64,000 nucleotides of DNA, from positions 87,606,001 to 87,670,000 of the forward strand of contig OZ241826.1 in NCBI GenBank assembly GCA_965202585.1, in the 5' to 3' direction. The position numbers and the translations under genes are program-made. The stretch comes from Thalia democratica (lineage: Eukaryota). The notes below the pieces were generated by a model. The model saw only the letters and a program-made list of their open reading frames with translations. It had not been told where the DNA came from and ran no database searches. Of the stretch, positions 711-62,917 are shown one piece after another. Within the stretch, counting starts at the first letter, position 1. Every line of letters begins with the position of its first letter.

Positions 711-2185
711 TTATAATGACCAAGACGTAAAAAAATAGTCTAATGATAATTTAAGTAAACTGATCAACAGAAACAAATCAAAAAGCAACTGTAACTTGTG
801 AACCCAAAATTTAACTGTTTTAGCAACTCTGAACAACAAACAAACAAATTTTTCAGAAGCTATCTTAAAACACTCAAAATGACGGCTGAAATATCCCTTG
901 ACGTGCTTCAAGCTATTATAGTAAAATAAACATAAAGACAAAATGCATATGGTGAGACCAATCATCAAAAACACTATGTTGCATTTATCTGAAAACCAGT
1001 AAAATTCTCCGTAGTTCAAACCTCCGAAGAAGTACTTTAAAGCTGGCGGCAGGAACTCCTCCGGCACGCTCTTCGTGTGGGCGAATAAATCTGCGTGCAG
1101 CGAAAAAGCGAAGAAGAGAAGGGTTAGCGGTGTTGTCAAGCTCGCCGAAAAATTGGTTTTCAGAAGGTCAAAGAGTTTTGCGTAGGCTGGCACGCTTGCG
1201 AATGTGGCGATAAGCTGACTAATTTTGCTAAGCCAGCACGATATCCACTGGGACCAGTTTTCATGGTCAAGCGGTTCGAATCCGAATGAGGTTATGACAT
1301 AATCTAAACAACTGTTTCCGATAATACTGCTAACTGTGTTTTTCATGTTTATCTCATTAAGTACAACACACTTTACGAAGCCGTAGAATGTAGCGCCTAC
1401 TTTCCGGAAACTCCATATAAAGATTATATGCATAAATATTAGCATAAACCATCCTTTCCACGTTTTAGAGTCTTTTAATTGTTTTTCTTTTGCTTTCATC
1501 TCCACCAATTCTCCACGCATTTTTTGAAGCTGTTCATTTGAACGATCATACTTAATTTGAAGATTATTCATAGACTTTTTATTCTCTTTAAATATGTCAA
1601 GCGTTTTACTTAACTCTTTAGTTGTTTCTTCTTCTGCGAGCACCTTTCTTTCAAAATCTTCTATTTCCTCGCTGATGTTCTTGCTAATCAACCAGTAAGT
1701 TGTTGTACAATAAAAATTATTGCAAGATCCGTAGCACTCATAAAATCTTTTGAGAGACAGTCCAATTTTAAGGACTCCACTCAGAATTTGCACATACAAC
1801 CCTACATAGCCATCTACATAACCTATGAACCAAAACACTGCATAAGACAAAAATGTCATTATAGCTGTTGCTGTTTTTATGTTTTCTGTCAATTTAGAAT
1901 CGCCTATACAGGTATACCATAACCAAGCTATTGCTGTGAAGACTGAGCACTGGGTGTAATAGAAAATGTTCTTAATACCGAAGTCTATCCACTCTGAGCT
2001 GTAGTCACCAGCAGTCTTAGCGTAAGTGAGTAAACCAAATATCCATCGAACAAGAATCATCACTACAATAAAAAGTTCATGAAGAAAAGGTATGTTGTTT
2101 TTGTATCTGAATTTTGAAAGAAATGGAAATAACAAAAGAAAAATTCAAAAAGAAATGAACTAATTCGTCTAAAATTTGTTTCCAT
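711..2185 (-). CDS. Divergent GPR89/Golgi pH regulator (GPHR/GTG)-like multi-pass membrane protein, intronless; probable 5' frameshift
   Basis: The 474-aa ORF has hydrophobic helices flanking a coiled-coil loop. SKTWKGWF, WSQWISCWL, SVPEEF and GLNYGEFYWFSD fall in the same order as GPR89 motifs (SKTxKG, WSQHISF, SMPxEY, FYHRWFD). The ORF starts at TTG 2135. The nearest ATG (2185, METNFRRISSFLFEFF) is 50 nt upstream and out of frame across T-runs. Confidence 0.7.
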
Positions 2186-2339
2186 TTTAAATATAGTTCA
2201 TTTACTATTTTGTAACTATCTGAAAATAAATTATTATGCTTAAAACTTTTACTAAACTAATTTAAAAAGTTAAATATATTTTCTAAATTTATGTACCTTT
2301 CTTAACGTAACAACACAATAAAGTGTATATATTATTTAA

Positions 2340-2507
2340 AAACTTACACTAGGTGTTTATGAGTTGATAATAAAGGGCAAAAAAATAATAAAGTATGTCA
2401 TTTTACAGTTTTAATGGTAGTTATTTGAAAACTATTTTTCGAGGGTACCATAGCTTTTTTAATTTATTTTATGGGGGACTTTTCAAAGAAAGTTTGGTAA
2501 ACCCTGA
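2340..2507 (+). mobile_element. 3' part of a hAT-like MITE (family of 31011-31270)
   Basis: TTTACAGTTTTAATGGTAG...CCATAGCTTTTT...AAGTTTGGTAAACCCTG parallels 3937-4035 and the 3' half of 31011-31270. Confidence 0.55.
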
Positions 2508-2875
2508 TCTAAATAAAAAATAAGCTTAATAGTGTGCTATTGGGTTAATTAAGTACCTTCTTTATAAAAAAAATTGAATAAAATTAAAGTTATGAGTCAA
2601 GATTTAAATGGATACGAGAACTATTTAATTTTATAAAGCATATATATAATAAACAATTTCCAAAATGAAATAAAAAAATACAAATGGTAGTTTATAACAA
2701 ATATCAACAAAAGCATTAACAAAACTGAGAATAAATGAAAAAGGCGAAATTTATTTTATTTTAAACTAAAAGGGTTGCCAAATTTTTTTGAGAAATTAAT
2801 TTTAGGGGTTTATAAGTACATGTTTGTAAGTATGATTTTATTTTAAAGCTAACTGAACACTGGTATTTAATAACT

Positions 2876-4035: not shown

Positions 4036-4049
4036 ATTATCTTTATGAA

Positions 4050-12335: not shown

Positions 12336-14467
12336 TAGGGGTAGGGAGTACTTGGGTGATGTTTGCTAGACTTTTTTTTCTTTTCGATTTAGATGTGTTT
12401 TAGCATTATTAAGAAGAACTTGATATTAAAAAAAAAAAAAATTCCAAAAAAAAAATTCCGAACCCAAAAATTGATTTTGACCCCAAAAATCACTTATTTT
12501 AATGATTTTTAACTTAAATAGTAATAAAATCACTTATACATGTCCTATACTTTTAATTTTTATCTTAAATTAAAGTTTACAGTTATAGGCAAACATTTAA
12601 AGACATTTTAACTGTGTTTGTAACATTATGACGTCATAATCACACAAAATATGTAAATTTTGACTGTAAGGGTACATTTTATTAAAAAGAGCTAATTTAT
12701 TCTGCTGTTGTGCTTTTACATTAGTGTAATGAACTAATGCTTGCATCATTCATTGTTGAACTCAAGAGAATATTTAGAGCTTGTTGCAGTTATGAGAAAT
12801 GAAGTTTAAAATCAATGATGCAACTTTTTATCAGTTTTATTTTATCAGTGCAGTAAAACTGGCTAGTGCAACAAATCATCAATATATTAATTTTGAGTTT
12901 TAGATAAAAAGTTAAAGTTAAATTATATGTTATCTGCTTTAATTTATTTATTTTAAAAGTTTAATAGTTATTAAATTTTTTATAGTTTTATTACACACTA
13001 GATAGAAATTTATTTAATTTTTAGTTTATTGTTTAAGTGGTTTGAAAAGTATTAGATATCTACAAGATCTTCAAGTGTTTTATAGTTTACTCAAAAAAAT
13101 TTGATTACTTACTTCTTAGTTGCTTTTGTACTAAAGATTTATAAAGTTCACTATACTGTTAAAGATAAAAAAAACAGTTTTTGTTAATTTTTTTACAGAT
13201 GAATAATAGTAGTAATTTAAGTATAATTCTGGGAGATTGCCTACCAACAACTTATGATGTTGCTATTAACATTTTTAACATTTGTTCTAACCCAAAATCA
13301 CAAAAGATGAAAAATTGTGTTAAGGCGTATGCAACAGCTCTCATTTTACAGTGGACCAAAGCATTTGGTGAAGAATATGTTCTGAAAATAAAACAAGTAC
13401 AATCAAAGTTGTTAACTGTAGTAAATAATTACTTTAGTAAAGTGTATAAGGAGCAGACCCGAGATAAATCAGGTGTCAAAAAGAGTTTGAGGCAGCTCAA
13501 CAAAGAATGGAGACAATCTAATATATTTACAGGTAGACATAAAAACGTACCTCTAGTTGTTAACAAGTTGTTTGACATAGGCAAAAACATGGATACTCTT
13601 ACTGGAGATGAGGCATGTTTTTATACTGATCAACTAAGTTCCCGTTGTGGCCGTATAAGTGAAGATGTTGATTTGAAATATGTAACTGAAAAGCAAACTT
13701 AGTTAGAATTAGCACAAGCAGCTCTGAAGCGAGACATGTGTGAGAAGTCATACATTTCGGAAGTTGATGTTGAACCTTCAGTTTCCAGTTCAAATGATGG
13801 TAGAAGTACTATCATTAGCACTAATCATTAACTTAATGATGCCATAAAAAATTATCTTGCCTATAATGCATTATAATTTTTTAATGTTTGGTTATTTATT
13901 TTGTTGTTATACTAATTGAATAATTATCTAAGAGTTTTTTAAACACTTATGACTAAATGAATTATGACATCTAACATCACGCTAATATACATACCAGTAC
14001 CACATCATTTAAATCTTTAAAGGTAAGTAAGAAGTTTGTTTAAAATGTTAAAGTAACTGTTACTTTTAGAATAAAAAATTTTAAATAGAGCTATGCTTAT
14101 TAAATTTTTAAAAAGTACTATTTTATCGAAAACATTTACATATTTTGTGTGATTATGACATCATAATGTAACAAAAACAGTTGAAATGTCTTTAAATGTT
14201 TGCCTATAACTGTAAACTTTAATTTAAGATAAAAACTATAAGTATAGGACATGTATAAGTGACTTTATTACTATTTAAGTCAAAAATAATGAAAATAAGT
14301 GATATTTGGGGTCAAAATCAATTTTTGGGTTCGGAATTTTTTTTTTTGGCAATTTTTTTTTTTTAATATTAAATTCTTCTTAATGATGCTAAAACACATC
14401 TAAATCAAAAAGAAAAATATAAATTTTACAACATGACCAAAAAAATGTGGTGTACTCCCTACCCCTA
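12336..14467 (+). mobile_element. Internally deleted hAT-superfamily-like DNA transposon
   Basis: Termini are TAGGGGTAGGGAGTAC / GTACTCCCTACCCCTA. ~300-bp sub-terminal inverted repeats lie at ~12380-12670 and ~14130-14420. AATAATG is duplicated on both flanks (12329-12335, 14468-14474). Confidence 0.85.
13199..13830 (+). pseudogene. Remnant N-terminal region of a probable transposase
   Basis: Lies inside the 12336-14467 element. ATG follows a TTTTTACAG acceptor. LPT..DV, W.KAF and LFDI...E..FY.DQ..R..IS motifs resemble, from memory, N-termini of hATm-like transposases. In-frame TAG at 13700-13702, then coding-like sequence continues. No catalytic domain. Confidence 0.5.
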
Positions 14468-16551
14468 AATAATGCCATTTTTATAATTTGGTTAGTTCAG
14501 GTTATCAATAAAAAGACTTAGTTTTTTTTAGAACCTATTTGTAATTTAATAAGTAACTTTTAATTCTATCTTCAAAACAAAGTATAGTTTTTTTTAAGTT
14601 TGTTATCAAAAAACCTTGTCTTTTATTCTAGTTACCAAGGTATTTTTCTCTCATTATTATGACTAAAAAAAATATTTTTTTAATAAGTTTACCATAAATT
14701 TCTCAGTTTCTGACTTTCACTATTTTAAAAAACTCAGGCTAGTTACAACAAAGTGCCACACACTCAGAATAGTCAAGGATAACTCAGCTAGTTTCTACTT
14801 TTTTTAAAACTAAGGATAAATCAAGTCAGTTAAATTTTAAGATCTTTGTAAATATCAGGAGTCAGGACTACTATTATCTTGATTTTAAATGAGATTTAGC
14901 CAAATTAGTTTCTTATTTTTTTAAACTAAATAACCAACTTATGTTATAGACTTTTTAATGAATTAAAAACTCAAGATAACTCAGACATTTTAAAATTAAT
15001 TTGATAAGTTTTTATTATTATATTTAGAAGTCAAAGTTAGACTTACATTTAAAAAACTAATATATTTCATTCAGATAAGCCTCAAACCAGAAGATGTTGT
15101 ACAAAAGTAAATTCCAAATTTAAATTAATATTGTTTTTTTTAATCTCTTTGGATTTTAAAATTACTAAAATTATACTACAAGATAGCTGTTGAAGTAAAA
15201 ATTGATAAACTTAAAATAAAACAGTGGAAAAGCAATAAGTTTTCACAACACTAAAATAATAATAAACCCTGGATTTTCCAACAATTACCAATGTAATATA
15301 CTTAAATTCTTATTGCATATGAACAATCTATCATGTATATGTATTTTTAATATTCATAACTATTTAACATAATTGTTTTACTTTAATTTTAGCTTTATAA
15401 AATTAATGGACATAAACTTTTACTTAATTACAACCTGTGAGAAACTCAAAAAACGTGATGATTATTTTTTAAAAGCCTTTGATAATTACAGAAAACATTA
15501 ATCTTAGTTAAAATTTCATTTATTAAACTACTTCTAATTTTTTCTATAAAATTAATTTTAATGATAAGTAAAATTTTAAATTAGAGCAGCATAAGTAAAG
15601 CACTGTTGTTTTCATAACTTTTTACAAAAATCAATTGTAAGAGCATGTACTTTTTCTTAGTGAATGACATAAAACTATAATTAAAATGTATTGAAGCATG
15701 GAACGTAGAAAAACAATGTAAAAAAATTATTCAAAATTTTAGTTTGTTTTTTAATTAAATACATCATTTTAAGTACATTCTGTGACAAGATTTCATTAGG
15801 ATATGAAAATAGTTTCCCAAAAAGGATAAATATTGTCCTCATATAGGCGATTTGACTTATTAGAATTTAAGTGCGAAGAAGTAATTATGTAACTTACTAA
15901 TAAAGAAGCTATATATAATGTTAAAGCGATATTTTTTTTAAATTTAGTCATGTGGGTGTTTATAAAAATAAGACTGAAAATTAGAAGATTGGAAAACAAT
16001 TTCAAAACTATACCTTGTGCTTGTAGTTAATTGATGAATTATTGTTTTAGAATTATTGATGGTATATCTAATGTTTTTTATACTTAAACTACAATAAAAA
16101 AACAACTTAAACTCTCACATTAAATTTTTTTATAGTTTTTTAGTTATTACAAAATGTTTGTAATTACAAAATAATGTTTTATTTTAAGCTATCATAAATT
16201 ACATTGAGTTATTAATCAACTTAGTTTTTATCAAAATTACTAAAATATAATAAAATTTAGTTTGTATAAAAGGGCTTGAATTTTAAGCTTAAGAAATTTT
16301 CTTTCATAACATTCTTTTTTTTTAAACACATTTTATTAAAATGTTAAGTTTATTTTAAGTATAACATATAGATAAAAAAAAACATCAAAAAATATTTGTT
16401 GTATGAAGTACTAGAATGTAGTCAGACAATGTATATAATAAGAGAATCTTACAAAAGATATTATTTTACATTGTAATCAAATATAGTGTAGACTATTATT
16501 TTATCATTCAAAGTTCCTAACAACACATTTAACAACAGACTAGATAAACAA

Positions 16552-19269
16552 ATGTCAAAAACCTTTAAAATTTTCATTCTGCTTTTGCTGGCGTGTTGCG
16601 GCACCTGCGATTGGTGGGTTTTGTACAGTAAAAATGGTAAACTGGAGAGAAGAACACCTCATAGTGTGTTGGAGGGAGATGAGACCACGTTGCAGTGTTT
16701 AGTGTATCAGAGTGATGCCATACAAAGCAAAACTCTCGTCAACTGGTATATATTACGTTACTTTTGTATTGGTTTTTGCTTAAAAGTAATCTTTTTGTTT
16801 AAAACACACTTTTTAGATTATTGTCTGGGTTTTTTAGCTACAACTTTGATTTACTTTATCTTCAATAAAGTGTTGTTTTAGCATGTATTTTTAAGTTTTT
16901 TTTAGTAAACACAAGACTAAATATATAAACTTACATGGAGACAATCCTCGATTTTTTGATATAAAAACTTAATTTTTCAAAATAATATAGAAAATTTAAA
17001 TAAAATCAAGAGTTGCCGCATGAAGGTTTTTTATAATTGTTCTAAACTTTAAACTGTATACTTTTGTGAAAATTGTCACATACAAAAAAATTTTTTAAAT
17101 ACAGTTTACATTAATGTTATTTTTTAAAAAGACAGCTTATGTAAAATTTTATTTTTGTACGCTAAAATTTTGTACAAGGTGTTTTATGATATTTCTCAAG
17201 CATGAAAATACTTATGGCTGAAAACTTAAAGTTTCCTACTGTCTGTATAATATATATTTTTAACAACTAAGAATAATATGATTAGAATAGTGCATTGAAA
17301 TTACTGTAATAAAAACACTTCTCAACCACTGTCTTATAAAATAAAAGGTTTCGTCAACCCGATAAATCGAAGAGTTCAATAGGAGAATTTATAGCTGGAG
17401 GGCTGATAGACCATGAGGGGCCGTGCAGAAAAGTGGGTGAAGGCAAGAACATGACCGAAATGTGCATGAAGAAGGGTACTTACGATCTGGTGTTGAAAAA
17501 TCCGCACAGGTCTTGATATTTTGAGCATTTTGCTATTTCGTTTAAAGATTAATTTTGATGAATCAAAAATAGAACTTTTCAAACTGTTGCACATGCCAAG
17601 CTTGTATGATAGATCCGTAGAGATTTTTTTTTACCCGAGCAACGAGTAATTTGTTTAATTTATTAATTTTAGCTTAAATTTTCATACAAATCAAAAAATA
17701 ACATTTGTGTAAGCAAAAAATTAAATTTAAACTAGATTGTAATGTGTATCATAATAGTTGCCACAGGTTACAGATAGTAACATACTTGATAAGCATAAGA
17801 GTTGTCAAAATACTATGGTCATGCCAATTAAGTACTGAAATGTAAAACTTTTGTTTTTGATTAAGATTTGAAGCTGAAGTAAAAAAAAACATTTTGTTTT
17901 AACAAAAGTGATCTGGACTGAATACTAAATACTAGGGCAGGCTAGACTATTTTTCAAAACTTTGGCGAAATGAAGAAGGGTACTTAAATTTTGATTGTTT
18001 TTGCACAATATTGATAGTATTAGTGTATTTTTATAAAACTTAAGTCAATTAAAATATTTTTTTTTTCCATTGAGTTCTTTTTCTTATATTTTTCTATAAG
18101 GCTCGATTAGTAGTTTTTTATCACTATGGTTTATTTTCAAATATCTTACAAAGCATGCTGATTGTTGTTTTTAGTCTTTCAGACAGGTTTTACCCCAAAC
18201 AACCCCGTACCAAACTTTTCTAGTCTGTTTTTTTATTTATTTACTTTAAATTAGTAGTACAATTCTGTTTCTAAAAAGTATTTAAATTTCATATACTGCT
18301 TAAAACGTTTTCTTCATTTTAAACCGATTAAAAATAATTTGTTTAAACAATTATCAAAGTATATTCTTTTTACTTCTCAATTACTGTTTTGACTTGATGT
18401 TTTTTATGTGCAAAAACAGATCGAACGGCGGAATTTACACTTGCCAGGTACTCAACACTCCCAACAACAAACCCATGCTGTACGGAGGCTACGAGCTCAG
18501 CGTCGTTTACCAACCATCCAAGCCCACAATAGAGTACATACCCGGGCGCATAGAGGAAAACGGAAAGTTCACGCTTCAGTACGTTTCCGACACCAAGTAC
18601 GAACCCCTACCGACGCTCGAGTGGTTCTTCAACGGCAACATGCTGAGACTGCAATCTCAAGAGCGAAGAGACTTTTTGGGCGTTGAAGTCGATCCCGACG
18701 GCTTGTTGACGTTCAAACACTTCAACGCGCACAACCACGGGGAATACTACTGCACTGCTTCCATGGTTGTTTATGGGCATGACGGAATTAAGTATCCTGC
18801 CGAAGAAGTCCCGAGCTACAAAACCAAGCTGGAGATTTCTTTCTGGTCGGACGCGGTCATCGGCGGGTTCTGCGGCGGTTTGGTTTTGCTCACAGGGTTG
18901 TGCGTTTGTTTGTACAAGACGTTCAAATATCCCTGCTTAGTGCCCAAGCGCATCGCAGAGTCCAAGCGCCTGGCTAGGTTCAATAGGTTCCGTGGTAACC
19001 GACCTGCAAACAATATCGCTCCAAACATCCATCACCCTGGAAAGGCTGAAAACAATGCGGATCAATCGAAAGCTCACAAGAACAATGAACTGTCAAACAA
19101 GCATGATCTGTTTAAAGTTACATGCGAAAGTGAGGAAAAACCTTCGGAAAGTCAAAATAACAATGAAAGTTTAATTCAAGAAAAAAATGAATCTGCATCA
19201 ACGTATCCACAACACAAGGAATCTCAATCTAGTAATACTGATCACAGCAAAGATGCCACTGAAAGCTAA
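16552..19269 (+). CDS. Type I membrane protein with signal peptide, two Ig-like domains and TM helix (exons 16552-16745, 17348-17509, 18420-19269)
   Basis: Two phase-2 GT-AG introns join in frame. Domain 1: TLQC...VNWF...YDLVLKNPHRSNGGIYTCQV. Domain 2: EPLPTLEWFFNG...LLTF...HGEYYC. TM: AVIGGFCGGLVLLTGLCVCLY. Confidence 0.85.
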
Positions 19270-25500: not shown

Positions 25501-25513
25501 TAAGAATTTTATT

Positions 25514-28400: not shown

Positions 28401-28473
28401 TTCCCAGACCCGGGAATCGAACCCGGGCCGCGTGGGCTAGAGCCACGAATCCTAACCACTAGACCACCTGGGA
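28401..28473 (-). tRNA. tRNA-Glu-like body with CTA (amber) anticodon; variant or pseudogene
   Basis: TCCCAGG TG GTCTAGTGGTTAGGATT CGTGG CTCTAGC CCACG CGGC CCGGG TTCGATT CCCGG G TCTGGGA A. A and B boxes are intact and all stems pair. One extra G follows the T-stem. TATATAAA at -33..-26; T5 terminator. Confidence 0.75.
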
Positions 28474-34482: not shown

Positions 34483-34548
34483 GTTTCAAGTACATAAATA
34501 CATACAAACATTCAATATATAAAGCAAATTATTGACCTACAACCAAGT

Positions 34549-42135: not shown

Positions 42136-42400
42136 TTGCAAAGTATTCCTCAGCTAGCAGGTAATCCTCAGGTTCAAAGTATTCCTCAGCTAGCAGGTAA
42201 TCCTCAGGTTCATAATAATTCTCAAACACTAGACAACCCTAAGGTACAGAGTAATTCTCAGTTACAAGGTAACCCTCAAGTTCAAAGTAATACTCAGTTA
42301 CCTGGTAATTCTCAGGTTCAAGTTAATTGCCAGTTACTAAGTAACGCTCAGGTTAAAAGTACTAACCAAATGCTATGCAATGCTCAGGTCCAACATAAAC
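42136..42400 (+). repeat. 36-bp coding minisatellite (QSIPQLAGNPQV-like) in Groucho-like exon 6
   Basis: CAAAGTATTCCTCAGCTAGCAGGTAATCCTCAGGTT occurs twice identically, followed by ~5 diverged units. Confidence 0.8.
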
Positions 42401-44712
42401 AACAAATGCAAGTAAACACAGTATTTAATGCAGAAAAGATGCAAAGCGAACCAGCTTTAGCCAAGACGCAAAGTGAACCTCAGGTGTTCGAAAGTCATCA
42501 AAAAAATCCAAAGCTACCAAGAAACAGCAAAATTAACAAAACTTTTCCTTTATCTACATCTGCAGGCCAACAAATGACAAGTCAAAACAAACGTAATTAG
42601 CCAGCCAAAAAGTAATTTAACTAAATGAAATAGTTAGTTGTGTAAAAATTTAAGTATCTTAAAATGAGTTTTAATCTTATTTTGCTTGGTGTCTACAGAA
42701 AAACACATGTATTGGTGTAGTTTTAGTACAATATTCCCTAACCTAATTAGTTTTATGTCGGTATTTCAGTGTTTCAAGTAATCTAGATTAGTTAGAGTTT
42801 AATGTAAAAATGTTTATATATTTTGCTATATTCAAATATGTTTAATTAACTAAGTTACAATTTTAGGCATTTTTTTACGATAATTTGACAAAAGCTTTGT
42901 CTTTTTAGATAAATTTTTGATAAAGTTTCAAGCCTCGAATATTTGTTTGTAATTAATATTGAAATTGAAACTATCAATCTAGTTTAATTTCAACTTTTGA
43001 AAAATAGTTCATTTTATATTCTTTTAAGTCTTACTTTAGATGGTATAATTTTATTTTTATAATTAATAAGTAAATTTTCGAAGCTTTTGAATATTAAATG
43101 TGCTAGATTAATTAAGCAAAACTTCTTTAGGTCTAAATAATTCATTTCCTCAAGTTGAAAGAAACTCTTATGCTACTAATCAGGTTTGTTTATTTATTTA
43201 AAATATTATATAAGAAAACCAAATATACATAATATGTATTATTTAAAAACTCTTTATGTAACAAAACGTTTTGTACACTTTTTAAATAGGGTATTGAAAT
43301 ATAAGTTGAAAATAAATTAGACATTTAAAATTTTTTTTTTTTTAAAGTTAGTCCGTTTTTATAAATAATCTTACAGACTCTAGTTAATTAAGATTGAAGA
43401 CTTAAATTTATAGTTTTAACTTTGTTTTATAAAGTTCTTTTAGAATTTGTCAATGAAAAGTTAAGTAATTTTACAATACAAGTAAAATTATTCGAAATTT
43501 TTGTTTATGATGTATAAATAGTTTAGCTCTAATAAAGATAAATTCTAAAAGACAGAATATTTTAAATAAATTAAGTTAGGTAAAAAAAATTTCAAACGTT
43601 TTTGGGCGGGTTTTAATTTTTCTAAATGTTCAAAAAAAAAAGTTTAAAGTTAATAAAAAATTAAAACCAATTATTAACAGAATGGAGGTAACACTTAAAA
43701 TTTTATAAATGTTCACAATCAAACAGGTGCTCTTATGTTTGCACTAAACAAGTTAAATTTCACATGATAATTTTCTTTGAAGTATTTTTTTTTGTTGTTT
43801 GACGCTCACATGAAAAGTTAAAAACGTCAAAATTTATTATTTTCTCAAACGTTTGAAAATTTCATGTGACCGAAGAACAGCTGCTTTCTCGTTTTACAAC
43901 AAACTTTTCGAATTCTTTAAATTAATGAACTGTTTGTAAATTTTGCCGACCCTAAACTTAAAAGCTACCGATGTACTAGTGATAAGTGGTTTGTTAATAG
44001 ATTCACTTTTTTACGTTTAGTGACGTAGTTAGAAAAATCTACTTTCACATACACAACATCATAATGATAAATGTTATTTTTAGTTAACATTTTTGATTGA
44101 CATAATGCAGCTGATCATTTATTTTTGAACAATTTTTCTTAATTTTAGACTATTTAAACAAACTTTATGTCTTGTAATGGTTATTATAAGCAACTTTATT
44201 TTTATAAGTATTTTTAGAAACTTTAAAAATTAAAAAAACAGATTCAATAGACTTAATAAGTGACCTTAAAGGCACTACAACACTTTTAAATATTTATTTA
44301 AAACAGACATAATACAAGAAGGAATTCAAGTTGAATATTTATGCATTTAAAAATTTTAATTTTTTTTTTTAATTACAATTAATCAGTTTTTACACAAACT
44401 GAATTTTCTAACTGTGATCCTGCAATAAAAAAATTATTAAAATGACAAATTATGCAAAGTCAGATATAACATCAAAGTTGAATTTTACCATAAGTATTAA
44501 GTAAATTTGACTATTGTATAACAGCTGTTTAGGTTATTATACAATAAGAAAGATTTATTAATAAAGTTTAATATAATTTTTTTTTTAATTATATGAATAA
44601 AATCAACATTTATCATATGCTTTTTAGAAATTGAGTTGACATAGTTATACTTCTATTATTGTTATTAAAATAATTATTATTATACAAGACTTCATACTAG
44701 TACTGTATATAA

Positions 44713-44890
44713 CAGTGCTTCTGAACCTTTTTCTAGTGGCGGAACCCTTTTGCAAAGTTCAACTTTTCCACGGGACCCCTAATTTTAATTTTACATAAAA
44801 TATTAAATCAAATAAATGTTCTTTTTTATATTTCGAAAGGCTTAGCAAAACCCCTGAGAGGCGTCGCGGAACCCCATTTTAGAAGCACTG
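44713..44890. mobile_element. hAT MITE, 178 bp, intronic
   Basis: TIRs CAGTGCTTCT / AGAAGCACTG with a perfect 8-bp TSD GTATATAA (44705-44712, 44891-44898). Confidence 0.92.
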
Positions 44891-47289
44891 GTATATAAGG
44901 TTTATTAAAACTGTTTTCAACTCATTATTTTTTTGTACGAACAAACTACAAGGTATATCAGTAGAGATATGTAAAAAGATATAAAGTTATGTTCTCAAAC
45001 AAATCAATTAAGTACTTAAAAAATAAAAGCGTTCACGGAAATAGAAAGATGATGTTTTTTTTAAACGTAGTTTTAAATACTTATTTACTTTATTTACCAC
45101 CTAGTTTTATAAGTTTTAAGTTAATTAAGTTTAAAGCAACAAATTTATTCTTAATTAAAAGTAAAAAGTTAATTTGTTTTCAGAGTACTACACATAAAAC
45201 TATAACTGCTGTTGTAGACAATTTAAAACAGTCAATAACAAATGAATATGGTAAGGTACAAAAGCAGCGCCAAAGTGAACCAAATGTAAGTGAGAATATT
45301 GTGAATCAAATCATGCCTCTAACAAAAATTTCAAAGAAACGTAAATTCCAGGTTAACTTTTGTTTTTATTTGTTAATTGTCAAAACCAGTTTTATTTTAA
45401 GTATTCATAAACGTTAATAAGCAAACAACGTTTTGCAATCAAATTCCTTTAGATGTAAAATACTATTAATTTATGCTATAGTTTGATAACATTGTGAAAA
45501 AAAAATTTAACTTGTAATTATATTACATTTTATTTAAACTACTTATATCAAATAAATCAAATGACTATTGAGAACTGAGAACGTTTTAAAATCTACTTAG
45601 ATTAGATTAAATCAAACTATTAACATAAAGTTGTTATTTAAGTGAAAAAGATTGTTTTGTTTATAGTTTACAAAACAAGTTTAACTAACTGTTCGAACAA
45701 CTTTAACTAAGAGAAAAAGTTAGCGTCAAAAGTTGAAACTAAACTTTACAAACCTATTATATTGTTTTAGTCGACAAATTTAACGATCATTTTCATTTAT
45801 TTGTTAAATTTTACAATGAACTGAATAAAATATTTGTTTTTTTTTACAGAATGTAGAACAAAACAGTAGTTATGAACTAATAACTGAAGAATCAAAAGAA
45901 GTTAGATCTTTTATATTTAGATGGTAAAAAAAAACATATGCCTAGAAAGATGTCAAAGATTGTTCAAAATTTTATTCTTTTTACTTAATAAACACTTTAA
46001 ACTTAAAAAGCATAATATAAAAAACCGAGTTTTTTGGAAAATTTAAATAAAGATGATAGAAAATTAACAAGAAAACGGCTACAAATTATATTATTAAGCC
46101 AATTCTATTATTTTAAACTTTAGATTCAAGCTTCGACCCCACTAAAAGACATTCTACGTTGTAATAACAACAAAGTGTTTATAAAACACAATAGTTTCGA
46201 TGCTGCTAATATCAGTAGAAAATCAATTAGTCCTATTGACGCTCAAAGTAGTGAAGAATCAAAAAAGTTTGTACAGTATCTAATATAGAGACTTTCTGAA
46301 TAAAATAAAAACTGTTATTTTGGTGTTCCTTAACATAACTTTTTTATTTATATTTAAACCATGTTTAATCTGATAATTTGGTCAGTATAAAGTATTAATA
46401 AATCAAAACCAACTGTTAAATAAATTTGTTTTTATGTGTAAAAATACAAACTAAACAAGTCTGTTGTTTAATTATTTAGCTAAAAAATATATGTGTTAAA
46501 TATCTTTAACAAAACCTCTTGTAAAACACAGTGTTGCTATAGAAGACAACAAATCTTCCAATATATCTCACAGTACTCAAATCAGAAGAAGCTCAAACAC
46601 GTTTGTAATTTGTTAAGTGTAGATATAAGTAGTGTTTTCTTTTAAACCAGATTTTTAGACGTAGTTAAATAATGTCTAACAGCACTATTTTTTTTATAAT
46701 ATTTAATAGTGACTTTATAAAAACAAATAATTTAAAACTTAATTGATTTAAAAATAGTAGTTTAGCTAAAATTAGTTTTTGACTAAACAAAAAAGTAAAA
46801 GGCAAAGTACATTGCAATTTAATTTCGGTTTTTAACAACCACAAAACAGGTCATTTGGATCAAAAAACAGTGATTCCACAAATACAAACGTTGTAAATTT
46901 AAGTAAAAATTCAAACAATGCTAGTGGCACAATTAGTGATTCGTGGTCTATTTCAGGTTAATATTTAATTAAAATTTCTTTAAATTTCATTATTATTTTT
47001 AGTTCGTAGTAGATACATTAAATAAACAAAAACAAAAAGTTTTATCTGTTAATGTTGAATTCAAAAGTGAAAATTGTTACATATTTTAAATGACCAGTGT
47101 ACTAAGTTATGAGGTTACTTAAATTGTTTGCATTATCCTTTTGTTAAATAAAAATTGATTCCTCAATATTTGAACTTTCATTTTTAATCTAAAGCGACTA
47201 AATCTGTTTGCAGGGCAACAAAAAATTCTAAACAAAAACAAGTTCAATGATGTTAACTCTATGTCACAAACAGCTGATACTTTAATGTC

Positions 47290-47385
47290 GAAATCAAACA
47301 ATCATTCAACTATGACGTCACAAACGGCTCAACAGAATACTATGACGTCAAAAACAGCTCATCAGAGCACCATGACATCACAAAT
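47290..47385 (+). repeat. 30-bp coding repeat (TMTSQTAQQN-like, 3 units) in Groucho-like exon 12
   Basis: ACTATGACGTCA(C/A)AAAC(G/A)GCTCA repeated. Confidence 0.7.
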
Positions 47386-50300
47386 GCATCTTGGCAGTAA
47401 CATTGCACCTGTTAAACGTTATAACTCTAATGTACCAACTCATATCCCTACGGATGTTACTGAAAATCACAAATTATCACACAACCCTAGTATGAATTTA
47501 CAAAGTTATTCAAATAAAATAGGTCATAAGGCTAATACTGATTATATTTCGCCATCAGATATAACACCAAAAATGAGGTTAGTATTAAATTTTTAAGCTT
47601 CAAAGACATTTCTAAAGTAAAGGGTTCTAAATTAAAGTAAGTTTATCAGTTTTGATGACTATAATAATACAAGCCTAGTATAAAAAACTTCCTTATTTTT
47701 AAACAGAGTTCAGCCTTCTAGCTACTATATAAATTCGCAAACGGACGATAAACCACAAAGAGTGAAGGTCCCTGCAAACTACATGATCGGAATGCCTATT
47801 GTTAATAAGCTGTGTTCATTGATGCATGGCGAAGTTGTTTGCGCTCTTACTGTCGGTGATGACGAGCAACGACCTCTAGTGTACACCGGTGGTAAAGGAA
47901 CAGTAAAAATTAGTCTAACTTTTTCACTTAAAGATAAATATTCTACTTATTTTTTTAGTTAAACTATAGTTTTATTTTTAATGTCTCTGCACTATAATCT
48001 TTTTAATTAATTGGTTATTAAGTAATTGATATGTACAGTGTAGTACAGTACACTCCTCAGTTTGATATAATACCATAATTTATTTTTTTATTCATCAAAT
48101 TGATTGTAAATAATAAGGTTTAATACATTTTATTTAGTTCAGTATTTTAAGTTAATAAATGTATAGAATAAATATTGAAGTTAGTTTATATGTTTAAAGT
48201 ATATATTTATTTGAAAATACATTTAGACTTTATTTTCAAGTTTAATTATGATTATTTAGTTTTAAAATTTCATCTCTACTTAGATTTGGGATATTTCAGT
48301 AACAAACGAGAATCTGCAAGAAATAACAAAACCAGTGACGCATTTCAGTTGTTTTGATGACGATTACATAAGAAAATGCAAACTTATAAATGAGGGAAAT
48401 TCTCTTTTAATTAGCGGTGAATCAACATCAGTATCAGTGTAGGATCTTAATTGTGGGGGAGCCCCTAGATTAAAGGTTTTTTATGAATTTGATCAAAGTT
48501 ATTATTGATTTGATCATTATACATTTTTATCTAGCTGATTTTAAACGCATTTAAAGACTTTTTTCTTAAGACTTAGATTAACATATAAAGCCTAGTTTTT
48601 GTGCTAAATTTTCTAAATTAAATGACAAAAAAAAATGAAATTATTCTTTTTTTAAGATAATAATTACGCAGTTGACACTTATGTTTATTAAAGATAATCT
48701 GAATATTTTTGTAGTACAATAATATTAAGTACAAAACTAACTTTTGTATTGATAATTATTAAATTTTCGTCATTTTTTCATTTAATTAATATTTACAAGT
48801 CTCAAATAACATTACCGAACTTTCGATGGTGCTTAGGACTTGCAACTTCTCAGGACTCCAAAACATGTTTTACTTGTTGTACAGATGGAACCGTATGCAT
48901 GTTGGATTTGCACAATCAACAAATTGTTCAGTATGTGATAACTATTAAAAAAAAATTACCATTAGTTTACAGAAAGCTACAGTATAGAATGAATCTATAT
49001 AATTTTTATCTTAATTATAAAAAAATGTTTAAAACTTTATTTTATTTCGAATATAAAACCTTTATTGGTTTTGTTGTTTTGAATTATTTAACAGGCACAG
49101 TTAATAATTTGTTATGTATGTTTCTATTAAGCTACCATTATGAAGTTAAAGGTTTTATTTAAAATGCTTGTTAATTATTTAACCTCTTATTTTTTAACAG
49201 GCAGTTCGCAGGACACACGGGCGTAGCTTCATGTATTGACATTTCTCCTGATGGAGATAAATTATTTACTGGTGGATTTGACCAAACTATCAGATGTTGG
49301 GATATTCGTCACAATAAACAGGCTTCCATCATTAATTTTGATAGTAAAGTTTACACTTTGGGTTGTTCACCGAATGTCAATTGGATTGCAGCTGGGTTAG
49401 ATTTTTGTTTTTATTTTTATTATATATCTTTTTAGTTTATATTTACTTACAAAATACTTTTTATTTGTTGTATTTCCTTGCTTAAAACTTAAAAATGGAA
49501 ATATTTATCCCTAGATTTTTAATAATAAAACTTAATCTATAATTTTGATTAAAAGTTTTAATTTTTTATTTTGAAAACTCAAAATTAAATCAATAAACTC
49601 TTGCACCTATTTCTCTGTTTGTAAAATTAGATTTTATTCACATATAACATAATACCCTTAAAATGGAAAATCTTGGTCAGGACTGCTGATTATTACTTGT
49701 AACAACGTTTTACTCTTAAACTTTATACTTACTACTAAAACAAGCTCCAATAATCACATTTAGCATAAAGTTATTAAATTAGTTTAAGTCAAACGAAAGA
49801 AAATTTGCCTTCTTTAACATAAAGTTACAAATACAAAACCGCCAGGTATTATTTTTTTTCATTAATATGACACAAAATTAAGTCTATAGTGGTTAAAGTA
49901 ACTGGGAAAAGTTATTTTACTTAATCATCAAGTACTTTACATAAATGATGTATTTATTTTAAAGTAGTTTATCAATTATAAATACTAAGTTATACATTAA
50001 GATATAACAAAACAGATTAGAAAATGGTGACGTGGAAGTATGCAAATTGGATAATAGTGCAAAGTATCAGATGAAACATCACAATAAGAGTGTTACATCA
50101 CTTAAATATGCACACAAAAAAGACTGGTTTGTTACAACTGGGCAAGATCATTTGGTTAATTTATGGAAAAATCCCTATGGCGCGAATATTTTTAATGTTG
50201 GTTAATCATTTTTTGATTTTAAAACATTAAAGAACATTCATTTAAAGAGCTAAAATGTTTTGATTAATTTTATTACTTGGGAAAATTTTAAAGAATATAA

Positions 50301-50697
50301 GTTTTAATTGGGTGAACAATTATTCAAATACGGACAATTTTAACTCCGACATTTTTATTTTCTGTAATGTTTTAAAAGGGCCACAACTAAAAAGTTATAT
50401 TTCAGTTCAAACAATTTAAAAACACGTAGAAATTTCTTATTAACACCTAGAAATACTTTTTGTTTTCTAAGTTTTGGTTCTGTAACAAAAGTATTCTTTA
50501 AGTTTTCAGTATCTGAAATGCAATAAAACCCGTTTTTATTTATTTAAAACGTTTGCCTAGTTGATGTTTTAATAAACTGCAGACTTGACAGAATTTTAAA
50601 ATTTTAATATTTAATATTTTTAAATACTGAATCTTTTATATTATAGTTTCGTTATTTTTTTTTAATCTTAAAGATAAGTTTCGATTATATGTTTTAA

Positions 50698-50826
<129 letters not shown>

Positions 50827-52591
50827 TGATCTTGAATAAGAAATCTTTGTTAAAATAATATTAATAGACGCTTATATACAAAAACTTCTATATTGCTAAA
50901 GTGTTTGTTGTAGCTGAACGTTGTTTTCAATATAGTAAACATTTATTTTTCCTTTAGTTTATACTTTAAATACCTTAAAAACAAATTTAACTTTTAGTTA
51001 AAAATCTCTATTTTAAATTTGTTCTTCTTTTTCGTAATCGTAACGAATGTATAATAATTCTTATTTTATTTTTTATCCAAAGATTTTTAATTTTCTTTAT
51101 TTAAAGGAAAGTTTGTTCTTGGATATATTACAATATTGATTTATTTGAATTGCTTATAGATTAGAGAAATATTTTTATTGTTAAAACTTGTTTTTTATTT
51201 TGATAGTTTTACTTAATTAGCAATTTAAATCTTAGAATTTACTGTTGGAACGTTGAATTATTGTTTAAATAAACCTATTGCAGTTAACTAGAAAAAAAAA
51301 GTATTTAAAATATATAACAAATATATTATATTGGTTTGTCTGAACCTACATAAAGTTAGAAAAAAAGTAAATTAAATTAAAACTTATAAATAAATTCTTA
51401 ACAAAAGTTTGCGTTAGATTTTACTATTTAGATAATTATGGGATAAGAATTGCGTCTTATATCGATTTTAAGAAATCAAAAAACAATATTAATCATAACC
51501 ATACTACTTCTTTTTGAAAAACACTAATTTTATTTTTATGAAATCATTAAATTTTAAGTTTTGTATAGATATTAGTCCTCAGATTTAATAATGATTAGAA
51601 GCGTATAGTATTGTTAATGAAAAAATAAAATAATCTACAAATAGTATTTTAGTACTATTTAATATAAAAATAGTAGTTTTAAAAATATAAAGTATTTTGT
51701 ATCAAGATGAAGTTTGCTTGTAGTTGAAACTTCTCAAAAAACTCTAGCAATCCAGTTCAAGTAATCTATATTATTATTGTTTATTGGATGATAAGAAAGC
51801 GCTACAAATATTTAGTCCGAAGACTTAGTGTACAGAGCAAACTTTCAGTTATCGATTCGTACACCACTTGAACACAGTTTAACGCTATTTTTAACGACAA
51901 TAACTGTCTAAAGGTTACTCAGGTGCATAAACGTTTAAATTTAAACAATTTGAAACAGTAGTAACACAAAAAGCAAAATTTTTATTAATAATCTAGTTGT
52001 TTGATTTTAGTAAAACAACTGAAACATAAATCCAATTTCTTATCTTATTTAATGATACTTATGAAAATATTTTTAAATCATTTTCTTAAAAAAAAAAACC
52101 CTAAAACACAACAAATATTATAATTAAGTGTATCAAAGCTACTGTGTGCATCATTTAGTAGAAAAGGACGACATTTCTACTAAATATAGCATAAATCATA
52201 CAAATACAAATATATAATAATGGGTACTTTAATATAGCCTAAATCAGCAACAGTCACTTAATACAAAAATTTAGCCTTAAAAATCGTCCTTGAGCTTCAA
52301 TTAAAAAATCTTTCAAAAAACAGTCGATCGCGCGAAACTATTTATAGTACTTCTAACGATTAAATTAATATGCCTCCTAAGCAAAGTTTATTAAAGTATG
52401 AACTTCGTTTGACCTTTCATTAGAATTATAATGATAATTTAAAAAATTTTTATGTTTTTAAAACGTATGAATAAAAGTATGAGTAAAAAAGTCAGAGAAA
52501 GATTTTGCAATTAAATACAATTAAGTTTTAACTTAAACTGTCACCAGGGTTGCGAATTTAAAAAGATAAGAATTTTATAAAAATAGAAGTA

Positions 52592-57411: not shown

Positions 57412-59239
57412 ATGGGAAAAGCAGATAAGAGAGCGATTTGTAATTTCTTGCACAAACATAAACCCAAAACTTGTAGAGCTGATGCAAATTCAAGTAATTT
57501 TTGTAATACAGTACTAAATGAAAATCTAAATTGTTCATTTCAAGATGATAAAAAAGTTTTACAAGCCTTTGTTAAACATTCAATTAATTTAGTTAGAGAA
57601 GAGAATGAACAAGATTTTTTAGTATTTGAAAAAAACAGTAAGTAAACTGCTGGTATTTCTAAGTATTTTACACAGTACCTTTATTTTAACAATTTGTTAT
57701 ATATTTTTTATAGTTTTATATTTAACTTAAATTTATTTATCTTTCACCCTTTCATGTTACTTAGCATAATTAATTAGTTTATACTTGAGTTTTTATTTAT
57801 ATTTAATTAAAAAGTTTTTTTACTTAGCATTATTTTGTTATTTGCATAATTAAGATATTACTTCTGCTTTTTACCGAAAACTACTACATTACTTAATGCT
57901 GGTTCTTAAATAAGTTAAATCTCATACATTACAATTAAAAACAGAAAAAAAATTGTTGACATGGAGATTATGGTTGAAATTCAACAGATTGTCGAAAACA
58001 CTCAACAGTGAAAAAATTGAAGACGCTTTAGCGACTATTGTAGAAGAAAATATCAACCCCGAAAATGCCTGTTTCTTTTACGAAGTTTTGAAGTGCAACA
58101 ACCTTAGAAGTACTGAAGTTTGCGCGTTTGAGCGGATCGAAAAGTAGTTTTATTTAATATTGAAAAACAAAACATTTATTAATTTGCCCATCAGTAAAGT
58201 ACACCGGATTTGTACGAGCTCCAAACTAAAAATTACTTCAGAAATTGAGGTAGCTAACTTTGTAGAAGCTTGGATAAATGACGACTTCTTGAATAGAATT
58301 AAGTACACAAAAGTACTTATTAAAGCAGTACGCTTGCCTTTATTAAGTTTTGCAGCATTGAAGTATTTAAAAAGTAAAAACTTATTTTGCAACAGCAGTG
58401 AAAGTATTACGCTTATAGATAAAGTGATAAAAGATAAAAGGGACGAAGTATTTTATCCAAAATCTTCATATTATCAAAGCCGTTACTGTGAACATAAAAT
58501 GTTTTATTTGTGCCTTCGAGACCACAAACATAGTGATTATAATAGTTTAGATCGCTATCTGTGTCAAATTAGTGACAGCAATAAAATTGTATCAAATCAA
58601 GTTGTAACATCTGGACATGTTAAAAAAACTCTTTTTAGTAATGGAAGCTTTTTTTTGTTTGACTGTGAATCTTTACATAAATATTCAACCATCACAGGAG
58701 CACACAAAATTTTATGGAATTATTTTGACGAGTACGTGTTCAATTTAGCATGTATTCTTATGGATAGATTATACGTTTTATGTGCTAAAGAAGCGCAATG
58801 TGGTTCAATCGATCACAGAAATGGAAAATTGTATGAAATACGAAGTATGCCTGACAAAGTATCACATGCAGCATGTGCTGTTTTTGAAGGTAGAATTATA
58901 GTCGCTGGTGGTACATATTACACTACAGGCCACTTTCAGTCGAACAAAGTGTTTGCCTATGACCATATTGACAACACCTGGTCTCGCATGCCTGATATGG
59001 TAGAACAAAGATATGGACACGATTCAGTATCGGTAAAAAACAAGCTTTATATGATTTGTGAAACGGAAAGGAGTAGCGAAGTTTATGATAGTTACAGCAA
59101 GACTTTTACTATACTTAAGCAACCCCTACTCAGTTTTTTCGACTTTTATTTGAATACAATAAGATACGCAACCATAGAAGATAAACAGGTTGTTTTTAGA
59201 AAATACGACCTCTATCATCCTCTTATTCTTGATTTGTGA
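57412..59239 (+). pseudogene. BACK-Kelch (KLHL-like) protein, copy 2 (exons 57412-57637, 57945-59239) with nonsense codon
   Basis: INPENAC, LKITSEIEVANFVEAWI...VRLPLLS, IIVAGG, YD....W..MP.M and KLYMI motifs. Same phase-1 intron as copy 1. In-frame TAG at 58145-58147 joins the two ORF-track pieces. The C-terminus is shorter than in copy 1. Confidence 0.85.
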
Positions 59240-61453
59240 ACTTCTTGAGCAATTTTTGAATACATGTTTATTATATAACGGTATAGGCTCAAATTTTTTA
59301 TTTTCTAGTTTTTAGTCCAGTTTCAAAAATGTTAGTTCTACATATGAATAAAAAGTTCTAATGTTTATAATTTTTTTTTAATTTTCTATCAAAAAATGTT
59401 AGTGACTAATGGGCTTCTAATTATTATAACATTATTTAACTCTTTGAAAAATGAGTTTACTTACCAAAATGTTAAAGATATCCGTGTGGTGTACGATTAA
59501 ATAACAAATAGATTTTTTGTGCATCATGTCCAAAGACCAAGCGTTTTTGAAGCTTTTTTTTTTGTCGTTCAATAGACCATAAATCTACTAAAAATATAGT
59601 TTGGTTTATATGAAAGTATTTTAGAAACAAGTTATAACATGAATGAGATACTTTTGTAATCGTGATATATTATTTACTTTTGTATTAAGTAGATAGACTT
59701 TTTGTTAAATTAAGAATATAAGTTATTCGATTTACAATTTGTAGACTTTAAATACGTATCGTTTATTATTTGTATATTAGTTAAAAAATATTAAAATATA
59801 CCATATAAATATTTATGCAATAAGATTAAAAATTATTAGTTATGAATATCAGAATTGTGTAATAGTTAGTCCGTTTATTTGATCAAGTTTTAACATTAGG
59901 GTATATAAAAAATTTTACTAAAACTTACAAAAGTTATCATCGTAAAAAATGGAATACAGGAGAATAAACAGGAGTTTTAAAACTTTGATTTCAATTTAAA
60001 CTAAAATAGCTTGTAGTATATTAAATATAGTTTTCTTTTAAGTAAAGATTTAAAAAAATGTTTTAAGATACTTGAAATATGTTTTTATTTTTTCGTAATA
60101 GTAAAATGTGTAAAGTATAATAACTTATATGGGCAAAGTTCATACAACGAACTATTGTAGTCAGACTAAGTAGATTGACGACTGCAAGTTTTTTGATTGC
60201 AACTGACAAACGTGTTTTAATATGAACAACACCTAGGTATCAGTCTACCGAAAGTTTGTGGACTGATGATAGAAATGATAAGATCGAACTATACTAATTT
60301 ATTTTAAATAAAGCTTAGGAGGATGAAATTTATTTTAAAGCAACAACAGACAAATCATATAAAAAGTTGTTAGTTTTATATACGATGTTTCGACCATTCT
60401 TTGATCTTCATTAACAATTCGAAAAACAATGTGAAAAAAAGTCAAAGCAAGAAAAATTTATAAAATAGTTTTCAATTAAATTATTTTCAAATTAGTTAAA
60501 AATACAAACCTTACTGAAAAATTAAATAAAACAGTATTAGTAAATAATTATTACAAAAAAGAAGTATTCATCTTTAATCAAACAAAATCTCAAGAAAAAA
60601 TACATTCTACTTTCATATACTTATAAATTTACAAATAAGTCTACCATTACAAATTAAATGTGATAACTTACTATTTAATATGATATTGTAGAGTTTAAAA
60701 ATACTTTGATATGTAGTCTTAAATGATTATTTTAGCTAATAATTACAATTTTTTGTTTTTACTTTCACAAAGACACAAGTGTATATCACTTAAAAAAATT
60801 GTAAAATATAAATGCGTCTTTTAAAATTATTCGACTACTCGTAAATTAGTTTAAGAGTATATTAAAATATGTAATCTAGTGTTATAGTTTTCGGTAACTT
60901 ATGCAAAACATTTCAAAGGCATCGAACAAAACATCATTTTGACTACCACTTTTTTTAATAAAATTTTTTTGGTTATAGTCGTTGAGACGGTTTTAATTTA
61001 AATTCAAGTATTTCTACTATAAAATATTTGAAAAAAGTATTAAAAGTCTCTAAACTTATTTCTGAGTAATTTTACAAAAAATTATAAAACTAACTATGAA
61101 GATAAGAAACACACTAAGAATATTTTTTTTCTTAAATAAACAGACAAGTAAAACGGTTATAAAAATTAGAAAAATTATATAGTAAGTGAACAAAATGTAT
61201 TAGAAACTGACAGAATAAAGTTTTTTTATACTTAACTTCACATAAAATTTGCTTAATATATGCTTGTTTAATATTTTAATTTAAACAATTATTTTAAACT
61301 AATTCTTAACTAATTTAAAAGGCAAAAAAAAACAGCATTTAACTTAAATATATAAAATAGCAATATGTCCCAATTTTCAAAAAATGATTATCTGAATCAT
61401 AAAAGATAGATAAAAAAGATAAAGCAGTAAAGTACAATTCTTGTTGTTGTTAT

Positions 61454-61939
61454 TCACATCTTTAAAGCTTCTTTATATGTTGGCAACCTATCATTTGTTA
61501 AATTATCCCCTGTTTCACTTATACTTTCATATTCTGAGTCATAGTTAGGAGGTGGTGCTAGTTCACTTCTGCGAGGATTCTCGTTATCTGGATGTTTTTT
61601 TTTATACTTAGTCAAAAAAAAAAGATTTAATTTTACACCAACAACTATTTTGTAAATTAAATTTATTACCAGTAGCACCAATAACCTATTTTTAATCATA
61701 TTAATATTGAAAAACATTTTTAGACATAAAAACTAATATATTAGCTTATTAAATATTTAGAATATTAGTTGTTGATATAATATGTAAAAAAAATAACAAA
61801 CTTGCGCTGTATGATACTGTTGTGTTCTGTTTATTTGATATGTTCCTACTCTCATTAATACATTTGAACAAATAATATATCAAAAAAATTATTAACATGC
61901 AGAATACAATCAAGGATATTAGAGACAAATCCTTCAAAA
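61454..61939 (-). CDS. Single-pass membrane protein with PY motifs, copy B (3' exons ~61939-61818, 61606-61454)
   Basis: TM LISLIVFCMLIIFLIYYLF, then a tail with PPPNY and LPTYKEALKM*. Acceptor TTTCAG at 61940. Exact splice sites are tentative (AAG acceptor). Confidence 0.65.
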
Positions 61940-62694
61940 CTGAAATATAATATTAATTTGGTTCGATATAACATGAAAACTTATCTATATAAGAATCTAA
62001 AAGTCTATTTTTCAAAATTAGATTTAATTTTAAATTAAATAATTAAATATTAACTCGGTGAAATAAAAGCTGTTTACAAAATTTAAAATTGCAACTAAGT
62101 AGTAATTATAATACTTTAAGTTTTGTACCCACTTTAAGTATTTTGCTAATAAATATTCTAGTTAATTTTAAAAAAAATGCTGACAGTTTTGTTATCAAAA
62201 GCCTTTAAGATACTAGTAACATTTTTTTAAGAACAATGTTTCGAAAACTTCAAGTTTGAGAAGAATTAAAACCTATTGCAAAATTCTATTCAAAACATAT
62301 ATAATTTTTAGTTTTTGAACACAAAAATTTGTTTAAAATTGTAAACCAAAGGTAAACTATAAACATAAATTAAATAAAGAAATGGCTTGTGCAACAAAAA
62401 AAAAGTTATTTTTGTTTTGATTTTTGAGTTAGTAAAAGAAAAAACTATTGTTATCTTTTTAAAAATTTAAATCTCGTTATAATGATTATCTTTCTAATAA
62501 TATTAATATCTAAAACTATAAAATATTTTTTCTTTTTTTATTATCAAACACACCTATATAAATAAATGTAAAAAAAAAATTATATACTGAAGCTATTAGA
62601 TGTTATTCTATAATTAATTATTTAATTCTTTAGTTCATATACACGCATTACTTACTATTGAGAACCAAAGTTAATAAAAAAACATGTTTTTTAC

Positions 62695-62917
62695 AGACTG
62701 ACTAGCAAATCAACATGTATACAAAACAGGAATGGCTGCAAGTCAGAGCAGCGGTGACTATGTCAGTCAAGCCGTATTATGGAAAAGTATGGATCAAAAC
62801 ATACAGGAAACGGTTTTGGTACAACGGTACAGTATGCTAACACAATGTTTCAACATGAAAGTAAATGTAGCATTCCAGCCTTGTAGTTAAAATGTTTTTA
62901 TTCACGAACTTAACAAC
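62695..62917 (-). pseudogene. Possible decayed upstream exon of PY-membrane gene copy B
   Basis: AG/GT-bounded 223-nt segment, less AT-rich than its flanks, whose phase fits the 61939 acceptor. It contains three in-frame stops. Confidence 0.3.

Follow-up and report, generated by a model that had tools for sequence, protein, structure and literature searches.

The stretch of Thalia democratica DNA analysed here (the window) is 64 kilobases (kb) long and corresponds to C1:87606001-87670000 of an assembly of 802 megabases (Mb). Its guanine plus cytosine (G+C) content is 24%, and that of its coding stretches 33-45%. The genes follow one another in this order: an orphan membrane-protein gene, an immunoglobulin (Ig)-domain receptor, a Kelch gene (Kelch-1), a small membrane-protein gene with a PY motif (PY-A), a few transfer RNA (tRNA) genes, a Groucho/TLE-like gene, a second Kelch gene (Kelch-2) and a second PY gene (PY-B). 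The original prediction, made from the letters of this stretch, described it as a gene graveyard in which almost every recognisable gene is disabled. Most of these lesions proved to be real in the assembly when compared with sister copies elsewhere in the genome. The window forms one unit in a young segmental-duplication array of several genes, which extends over C1:87.3-88.0 Mb and has further copies on an unplaced contig (C15). Its broken genes are most probably explained by birth-and-death decay of redundant duplicates in this still-recombining array, and not by silencing of the block.

Every gene of the window proved to have close paralogs in the array region (C1:87.32-87.98 Mb or contig C15) when the genome was searched with proteins, gene by gene; a DNA search with blocks of 20 kb scored few candidates, mainly a transposon. 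The array comprises at least 10 units within approximately 0.7 Mb, with about 3 to 13 copies per gene. Thirteen close copies were found for Kelch-2, 12 for the Groucho-like gene (each with its Q-rich middle exon beside it), five for the orphan membrane gene, four for the Ig receptor and three for Kelch-1, which is also represented by older clusters at 23.6 and 30.7 Mb, and the copies of the PY genes were confined to the array region. Units are present in direct and inverted orientation with gene order and spacing repeated; for example, the succession of Kelch-2, the Groucho-like gene, Kelch-1, the Ig receptor and the membrane gene is found on the opposite strand at 87.716-87.777 Mb. Positions 38,000-51,500 of the window are collinear with nine paralogous blocks; the DNA identity, with introns counted, is 75-96%. 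That of the Kelch-2 paralogs, again across the intron, is 84-95%, and the Ig region shows 88-94% identity between copies over 7 kb. The stretch is thus a segmental duplicate, as had been proposed among other possibilities, and the recommended search for an intact paralogous block ended in collinear sister copies with intact and broken genes mixed. In short-read contigs the depth was about 50 at window-specific pieces versus 400-640 at shared exons, which corresponds to 8-12 copies and agrees with the assembly. This contig depth argues against the sister units being haplotigs or assembly duplicates.

The Groucho/TLE-like gene is located at 39029-50829 on the plus strand and carries three disabling changes, all predicted earlier and each borne out by comparison with nine paralogs. 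A scan of the frames left open in the paralogs for stops present in the window copy alone found a TGA at 42034-42036, where the nine paralogs read GGA or GTA. The donor of the first WD40 exon (47909-47910) is AT in the window and GT in all nine paralogs, and the TAG at 48440-48442 is TGG in nine of the nine compared; the same change from tryptophan to stop is present in two other Groucho-like copies. Six WD40 exons could be rebuilt: W1 (47707-47908), W2 (48284-48475), W3 (48800-48930), W4 (49201-49395), W5 (50016-50196) and W6 (50710-50829). Their junctions are AG...GT throughout the ten copies with the first donor of the window as sole exception, so that five of six donors and all six acceptors are kept in the window. 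Between copies, the ratio of non-synonymous to synonymous substitution rates (dN/dS) of the WD40 part is 0.16-0.39, with dS close to intron divergence, indicating that the family was under constraint during its divergence. A conservation profile over the 5' part of the gene failed to tell exons and introns apart, the copies being too similar to one another.

For the assignment of this gene, exons W4 and W5 align collinearly with residues 178-240 and 244-301 of the TLE1 WD40 domain (PDB 1GXR) with E values of 1.5e-23 and 3.3e-14, respectively, and TLE1 is the best match for W5. No Pfam TLE_N (Q domain) match was obtained for the 53-amino-acid piece of the first exon at E values up to 0.5, its likeness to a Q domain being seen by eye. 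Further tandem clusters with dozens of Groucho/TLE-like WD40 exons, at 54-66% identity to those of the window, are located at C9:51.4-52.0 Mb, at C1:1.5-2.6 Mb and on C244 and C777. Groucho/TLE-like genes are normally few per genome, and the family found here is unusually large for an animal. A literature search on Groucho and Kelch gene expansions returned nothing relevant.

Kelch-2 (57412-59239, plus strand) consists of exon 1 (57412-57637), an intron (57638-57944) and exon 2 (57945-59239). The spliced model contains a single internal stop, the predicted TAG at 58145-58147, which is private to the window and is TGG in all eight paralogs compared. Pfam identified BACK (PF07707, 2e-10) and Kelch (PF01344, 3e-10) domains in 58148-59236, and dN/dS between copies is 0.4-0.6. 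At one locus of the array (C1:87511886-87514234), two Kelch-2 copies are placed head to head about 140 bp apart and form a near-perfect palindrome.

Kelch-1 (22701-24631, plus strand) was also listed as disabled, by a TGA-TAA in exon 1, and this part of the original prediction has to be withdrawn. These stops (22980-22985) are situated in the intron (22939-23144), a stretch with stops in all paralogs, intact ones included. Exon 1 (22701-22938) spliced to exon 2 (23145-24631) gives an uninterrupted frame of 574 amino acids, with a phase 1 donor at 22939 that matches the requirement of exon 2. Kelch-1 should therefore stay annotated as a gene. The donor reads GTTTGT in the window and in its 99% identical twin at C1:87.848 Mb, and GTATGT in two other paralogs; with its T at position +3, this splice site may be weakened, although the gene is intact in all other respects. 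BACK (PF07707, 5e-17) and Kelch (PF01344, 3e-21) domains were found in 23132-24628. The dN/dS of Kelch-1 is 0.3 against the distant older clusters and 0.94 against a 92% identical copy of the array, suggesting relaxed or diversifying evolution within the array even where frames are open. Pfam found no BTB domain in either Kelch gene, the parts covered being exon 1 and the beginning of exon 2. At the genome scale the BACK-Kelch query returned more than 4,700 first-look candidates, and about 15% of the scored copies contained in-frame stops, which describes a huge expansion with a steady pseudogene background.

The orphan gene (714-2201, minus strand) encodes a multi-pass membrane protein, of which a frame of 477 codons (714-2144) is open. 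It had been predicted as GPR89-like with its start out of frame. The frame lesion was confirmed as a private deletion of one nucleotide at 2113/2114. Paralogs begin with MI(F/Y)GM(D/E)AYF, and the second ATG of this motif is retained in the window (2185-2183, minus strand), out of frame; with the base at 2113/2114 missing, reading from this ATG meets a stop, which leaves the long frame without its conserved start. The name did not hold: neither the 477-amino-acid frame of the window nor an intact paralog of 492 amino acids had a Pfam match, GPHR_N and ABA_GPCR included, and the likeness to GPR89, the Golgi pH regulator, is only a loose one of membrane helices around a coiled-coil loop. All five copies lie within the array, three of them open and two broken. 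Comparisons involving the window copy give a dN/dS of 0.64-0.72, and that of two open copies gives 0.38.

The Ig-domain receptor pseudogene (16492-20453, plus strand), with a Pfam Ig domain in 18304-19266, was compared with the copy at C1:87.797 Mb, which has an open last exon of 692 codons. This comparison reproduced exactly the three frameshifts and the TAA that had been read in the receptor tail: deletions of one nucleotide at about 19269 and 19453, a change of CCA to TAA at 19652-19654 and an insertion of one nucleotide at about 19866. The last three are identical in the copy at C1:87.85 Mb. They must have arisen before these two copies separated, and assembly error is ruled out there. The tail of the window copy has also gained an in-frame repeat of 117 nucleotides (20102-20218). 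More generally, the tail consists of NPN(M/I)V(P/S)QRH-like repeats, with a length varying by 117 nucleotides among copies and a conserved terminal PSNYTY motif.

Of the two PY genes, PY-A (25520-26050, minus strand) is a pseudogene, as was predicted, with a frameshift and a TGA common to three of three copies. The window copy carries in addition a private change of CAG to TAG (25627-25625, minus strand), and its PPTY motif has become PPTF. The last exon of PY-B (61457-61900, minus strand; PPPNY ... LPTYKEALKM) is open in the window; a sister copy has a change of TCA to TAA.

When the copies of the array are counted together, about 20 of 37 are broken and about 17 are open. Broken copies amount to five of nine for the Groucho-like WD40 part, seven of 13 for Kelch-2 (broken or partial), three of four for the Ig receptor, two of five for the orphan membrane gene and three of three for PY-A, and none of the three Kelch-1 copies is broken. 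The breaks are scattered across all units, and different genes are hit in different units; in the unit at 87.72-87.78 Mb, for instance, Kelch-2, Kelch-1 and the membrane gene are open and the Groucho-like and Ig genes are broken. Most splice sites of the Groucho-like WD40 exons are still kept in the window. The changes private to the window number six non-synonymous to seven synonymous in the Groucho-like gene and 14 to 10 in Kelch-2, a synonymous excess far from the neutral ratio of about 3-4 to 1. The private lesions are therefore recent, as the original prediction had supposed of the decay in general.

These counts bear directly on a block-level loss of selection, the cause proposed originally, in which the 64-kb unit as such, for example as heterochromatin or a dispensable duplicate, would have been silenced and its genes would have decayed jointly. 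Five of its six or seven protein-coding genes are indeed disabled, the Groucho-like gene alone has three private lesions, and tRNA copies are flawed too, as this proposal would expect. However, the sister units are equally broken, at about 54% and with other genes affected per unit, and the window (five of six) is not significantly above the array rate (binomial P of about 0.15). Both the window copy of Kelch-1 and its 99% twin are intact, the lesions of the Ig and PY-A genes predate the last duplication of the unit, and private changes in the Groucho-like gene and Kelch-2 are still rich in synonymous ones, so the genes did not all leave constraint early. With lesions spread over all sister units, silencing specific to this block is considered unlikely.

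The sequence identity between units is mosaic. In the comparison of 38800-51000 with its paralogs, the nearest paralog of the window switches every 1-3 kb: it is the copy at 87.72 Mb for 38.8-41.3 kb (96-97%), a copy on C15 for 42.3-43.3 kb (97-99%) and another C15 copy for 43.8-45.3 kb (97-98%). A single paralog can show 97% identity over one stretch and 73-83% further along, and two deeply separated sequence classes exist for the intron at 49.5-50.0 kb, three copies being 92-94% and six copies 73-74% identical to the window. This pattern indicates frequent gene conversion or unequal crossing-over among units.

Birth-and-death decay of redundant duplicates starts here from a multigene unit that was duplicated repeatedly, in direct as well as inverted orientation, and whose copies continue to recombine through gene conversion or unequal crossing-over. 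With many redundant copies, selection would keep only some, and the remaining ones would be disabled gene after gene, by nonsense, frameshift or splice-site changes. Most of these are G to A or C to T, as expected in a genome with 24% G+C. Genes already dead would be carried along as units are copied again. The lesions common to several copies of the Ig and PY-A genes show that dead genes were in fact re-duplicated. Disabling mutations are the ordinary fate of redundant duplicates, and redundancy is here the presumed cause of decay, the private lesions being taken as probable true alleles and the broken copies as probably non-functional.

Some observations weigh against this interpretation, and the main weakness is that seven private lesions (2113/2114, about 19269, 25626, 42034, 47909, 48441 and 58146) rest on the assembly. 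A run search yielded two runs of one organism (a single sample), one run of a second organism and two marine metagenomes, all as contigs only and none of RNA; the Logan contigs of four runs were aligned to 45000-50999 (6,000 letters). At 48441 every aligned contig reads G (TGG), at a depth of 290-430. Two of the private lesions are indels of one nucleotide beside A-runs, and this is the kind of difference that long-read assemblies get wrong. In addition, Kelch-1 and PY-B are still open in the window unit, and the broken copies are presumed from their sequence to be non-functional.

Alternatively, the window genes might be intact, the stops and indels private to this copy being errors of the consensus in an array that is hard to assemble. 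Such an artefact would account for the G in place of the A of the assembly at 48441 in all contigs aligned at 95% identity or more, and for the two single-base indels adjoining A-runs. On the other side, the three shared Ig lesions and those of PY-A recur identically in independently assembled sister copies, and five of the private lesions are substitutions, not changes in homopolymer length. Contigs over 48441 have 6-9 times the single-copy depth, as expected if they derive from paralogs. One of these contigs (130 nucleotides, depth 432) differs from the window at two sites, which would be 48441 itself and a neutral variant private to the window at 48403. Lacking the window-private variants, it derives from the paralogs, minor branches being dropped during contig building. 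The depth at 48441 fits a paralog consensus, but an assembly error or a rare allele may also account for this site. Elsewhere in the aligned region, window-specific contigs with zero differences were found at a depth of about 50, so the window copy exists in that sample. A general artefact is for these reasons quite improbable.

A further possibility, regarded as very unlikely, is that the array represents a fast-evolving recognition locus of self/non-self or immune type. The Ig receptor, long repeat tail included, the Kelch adaptors and the Groucho-like repressor would then have been amplified together as a functional cassette, and the many pseudogenes would serve as a gene-conversion reservoir diversifying the few working genes.

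Four tRNA-like sequences could be detected in the window and not five, so that the predicted set of three tRNA pseudogenes with flawed Gln and Glu-type copies was right only for part of them. The copy at 28400-28473 (minus strand; 42 bits against the Rfam tRNA model) is a decayed tRNA-Glu(CTC) with an anticodon that reads CTA. Mismatches were confirmed in tRNA-Gln(CTG) at 30169-30240 (minus strand, 58.5 bits; one in the acceptor stem and one in the anticodon stem) and are present in the acceptor and D stems of tRNA-Pro(CGG) at 33137-33208 (minus strand, 45.8 bits). The tRNA-Ala(CGC) at 34549-34621 (plus strand, 66.9 bits) is apparently sound, with no mismatched pairs. Among 240 first-look candidates, 39 scored matches share 95-96% identity with the CTA copy, and the six relatives that were fetched, two from sister units and four from elsewhere in the genome, are all tRNA-Glu and retain CTC. 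Compared with the four genome-wide copies, it has A in place of C36, G in place of A37 and an additional G where the T arm meets the acceptor stem, the anticodon loop having changed from CTCTCAC to CTCTAGC.

An alternative nuclear genetic code was considered and rejected, as reading TAA or TAG as a sense codon reveals no different gene set. Standard-code open frames of 499, 477, 363 and 321 codons exist at 24% G+C, from which it follows that the standard code applies. Among the copies of Kelch-2, the Groucho-like gene and PY-A that were compared, in-frame TAGs were confined to individual copies, as private changes. Read-through of these stops by the CTA-anticodon tRNA of the unit is extremely improbable: three private stops (Kelch-2, Groucho-like and PY-A) are TAG and such a tRNA is present at 28400-28473, but genes end on ordinary stops with frames as long as 499 and 477 codons, the lesions also comprise TGA, TAA, frameshifts and loss of a splice site, the tRNA is a tRNA-Glu(CTC) copy with three private changes, among them an extra base that disturbs the acceptor and T arms, its sister copies keep CTC, and G to A and C to T mutations most commonly create stops by way of TGG to TAG and CAG to TAG.

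Two repeats complete the window. A transposon-like repeat of 2.1 kb (12336-14467) has terminal inverted repeats of about 330 bp. Many chromosomes carry it, in more than 40 copies that are 98-99% identical. These copies form a very young DNA transposon family that is probably still mobile; the element is a passenger unrelated to gene decay. Its frame of 177 codons gave a weak, sub-threshold match to TROVE. An interspersed repeat of 180 nucleotides (44712-44891) is inserted in a Groucho-like intron; the genome holds 1,699 first-look candidates for it, about 90% identical. Among the aligned copies only the one at C15:151098 has it too, which identifies these two segments as sisters.

For annotation, the birth-and-death reading means that roughly one in two gene-like sequences of this 0.7-Mb region is a pseudogene and has to be left out of gene counts. 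The CTA tRNA, likewise, should not be read as a suppressor. The array offers a clear example of a multigene unit that amplifies, is homogenised by gene conversion and decays, and the lesions that its copies have in common show that some genes had died by the time of the last duplications. What is unusual is the combination of unrelated genes in one unit and the presence of Groucho/TLE-like genes by the dozens; the remainder will not surprise a specialist.

Several known systems can be compared with these findings. With nonsense-suppressor tRNA genes the window shares a tRNA-shaped sequence with anticodon CTA, which differs from them in being a mutated Glu(CTC) copy with an extra base and G37, in a decaying duplicated unit. 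Both Kelch genes resemble the BTB-BACK-Kelch (KLHL) adaptors in the succession of BACK and Kelch repeats; unlike these, they have no detected BTB domain and belong to a very large lineage-specific expansion. The Groucho-like gene shares with Groucho/TLE the TLE-type C-terminal WD40 domain, and all copies retain its six-exon WD40 model; it differs in having about a dozen local copies and dozens elsewhere in the genome, the window copy bearing three disabling lesions. For the array as a whole, a close parallel is found in the birth-and-death arrays of olfactory receptor, MHC, immunoglobulin and KIR/NLR-type genes. Unlike these arrays, the present one combines unrelated genes in its unit instead of members of one family, and is known here from sequence alone. 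In common with them, it displays repeated duplication of a unit, about half of the copies as pseudogenes, copy-specific lesions, gene-conversion mosaics and pseudogenes re-duplicated as passengers.

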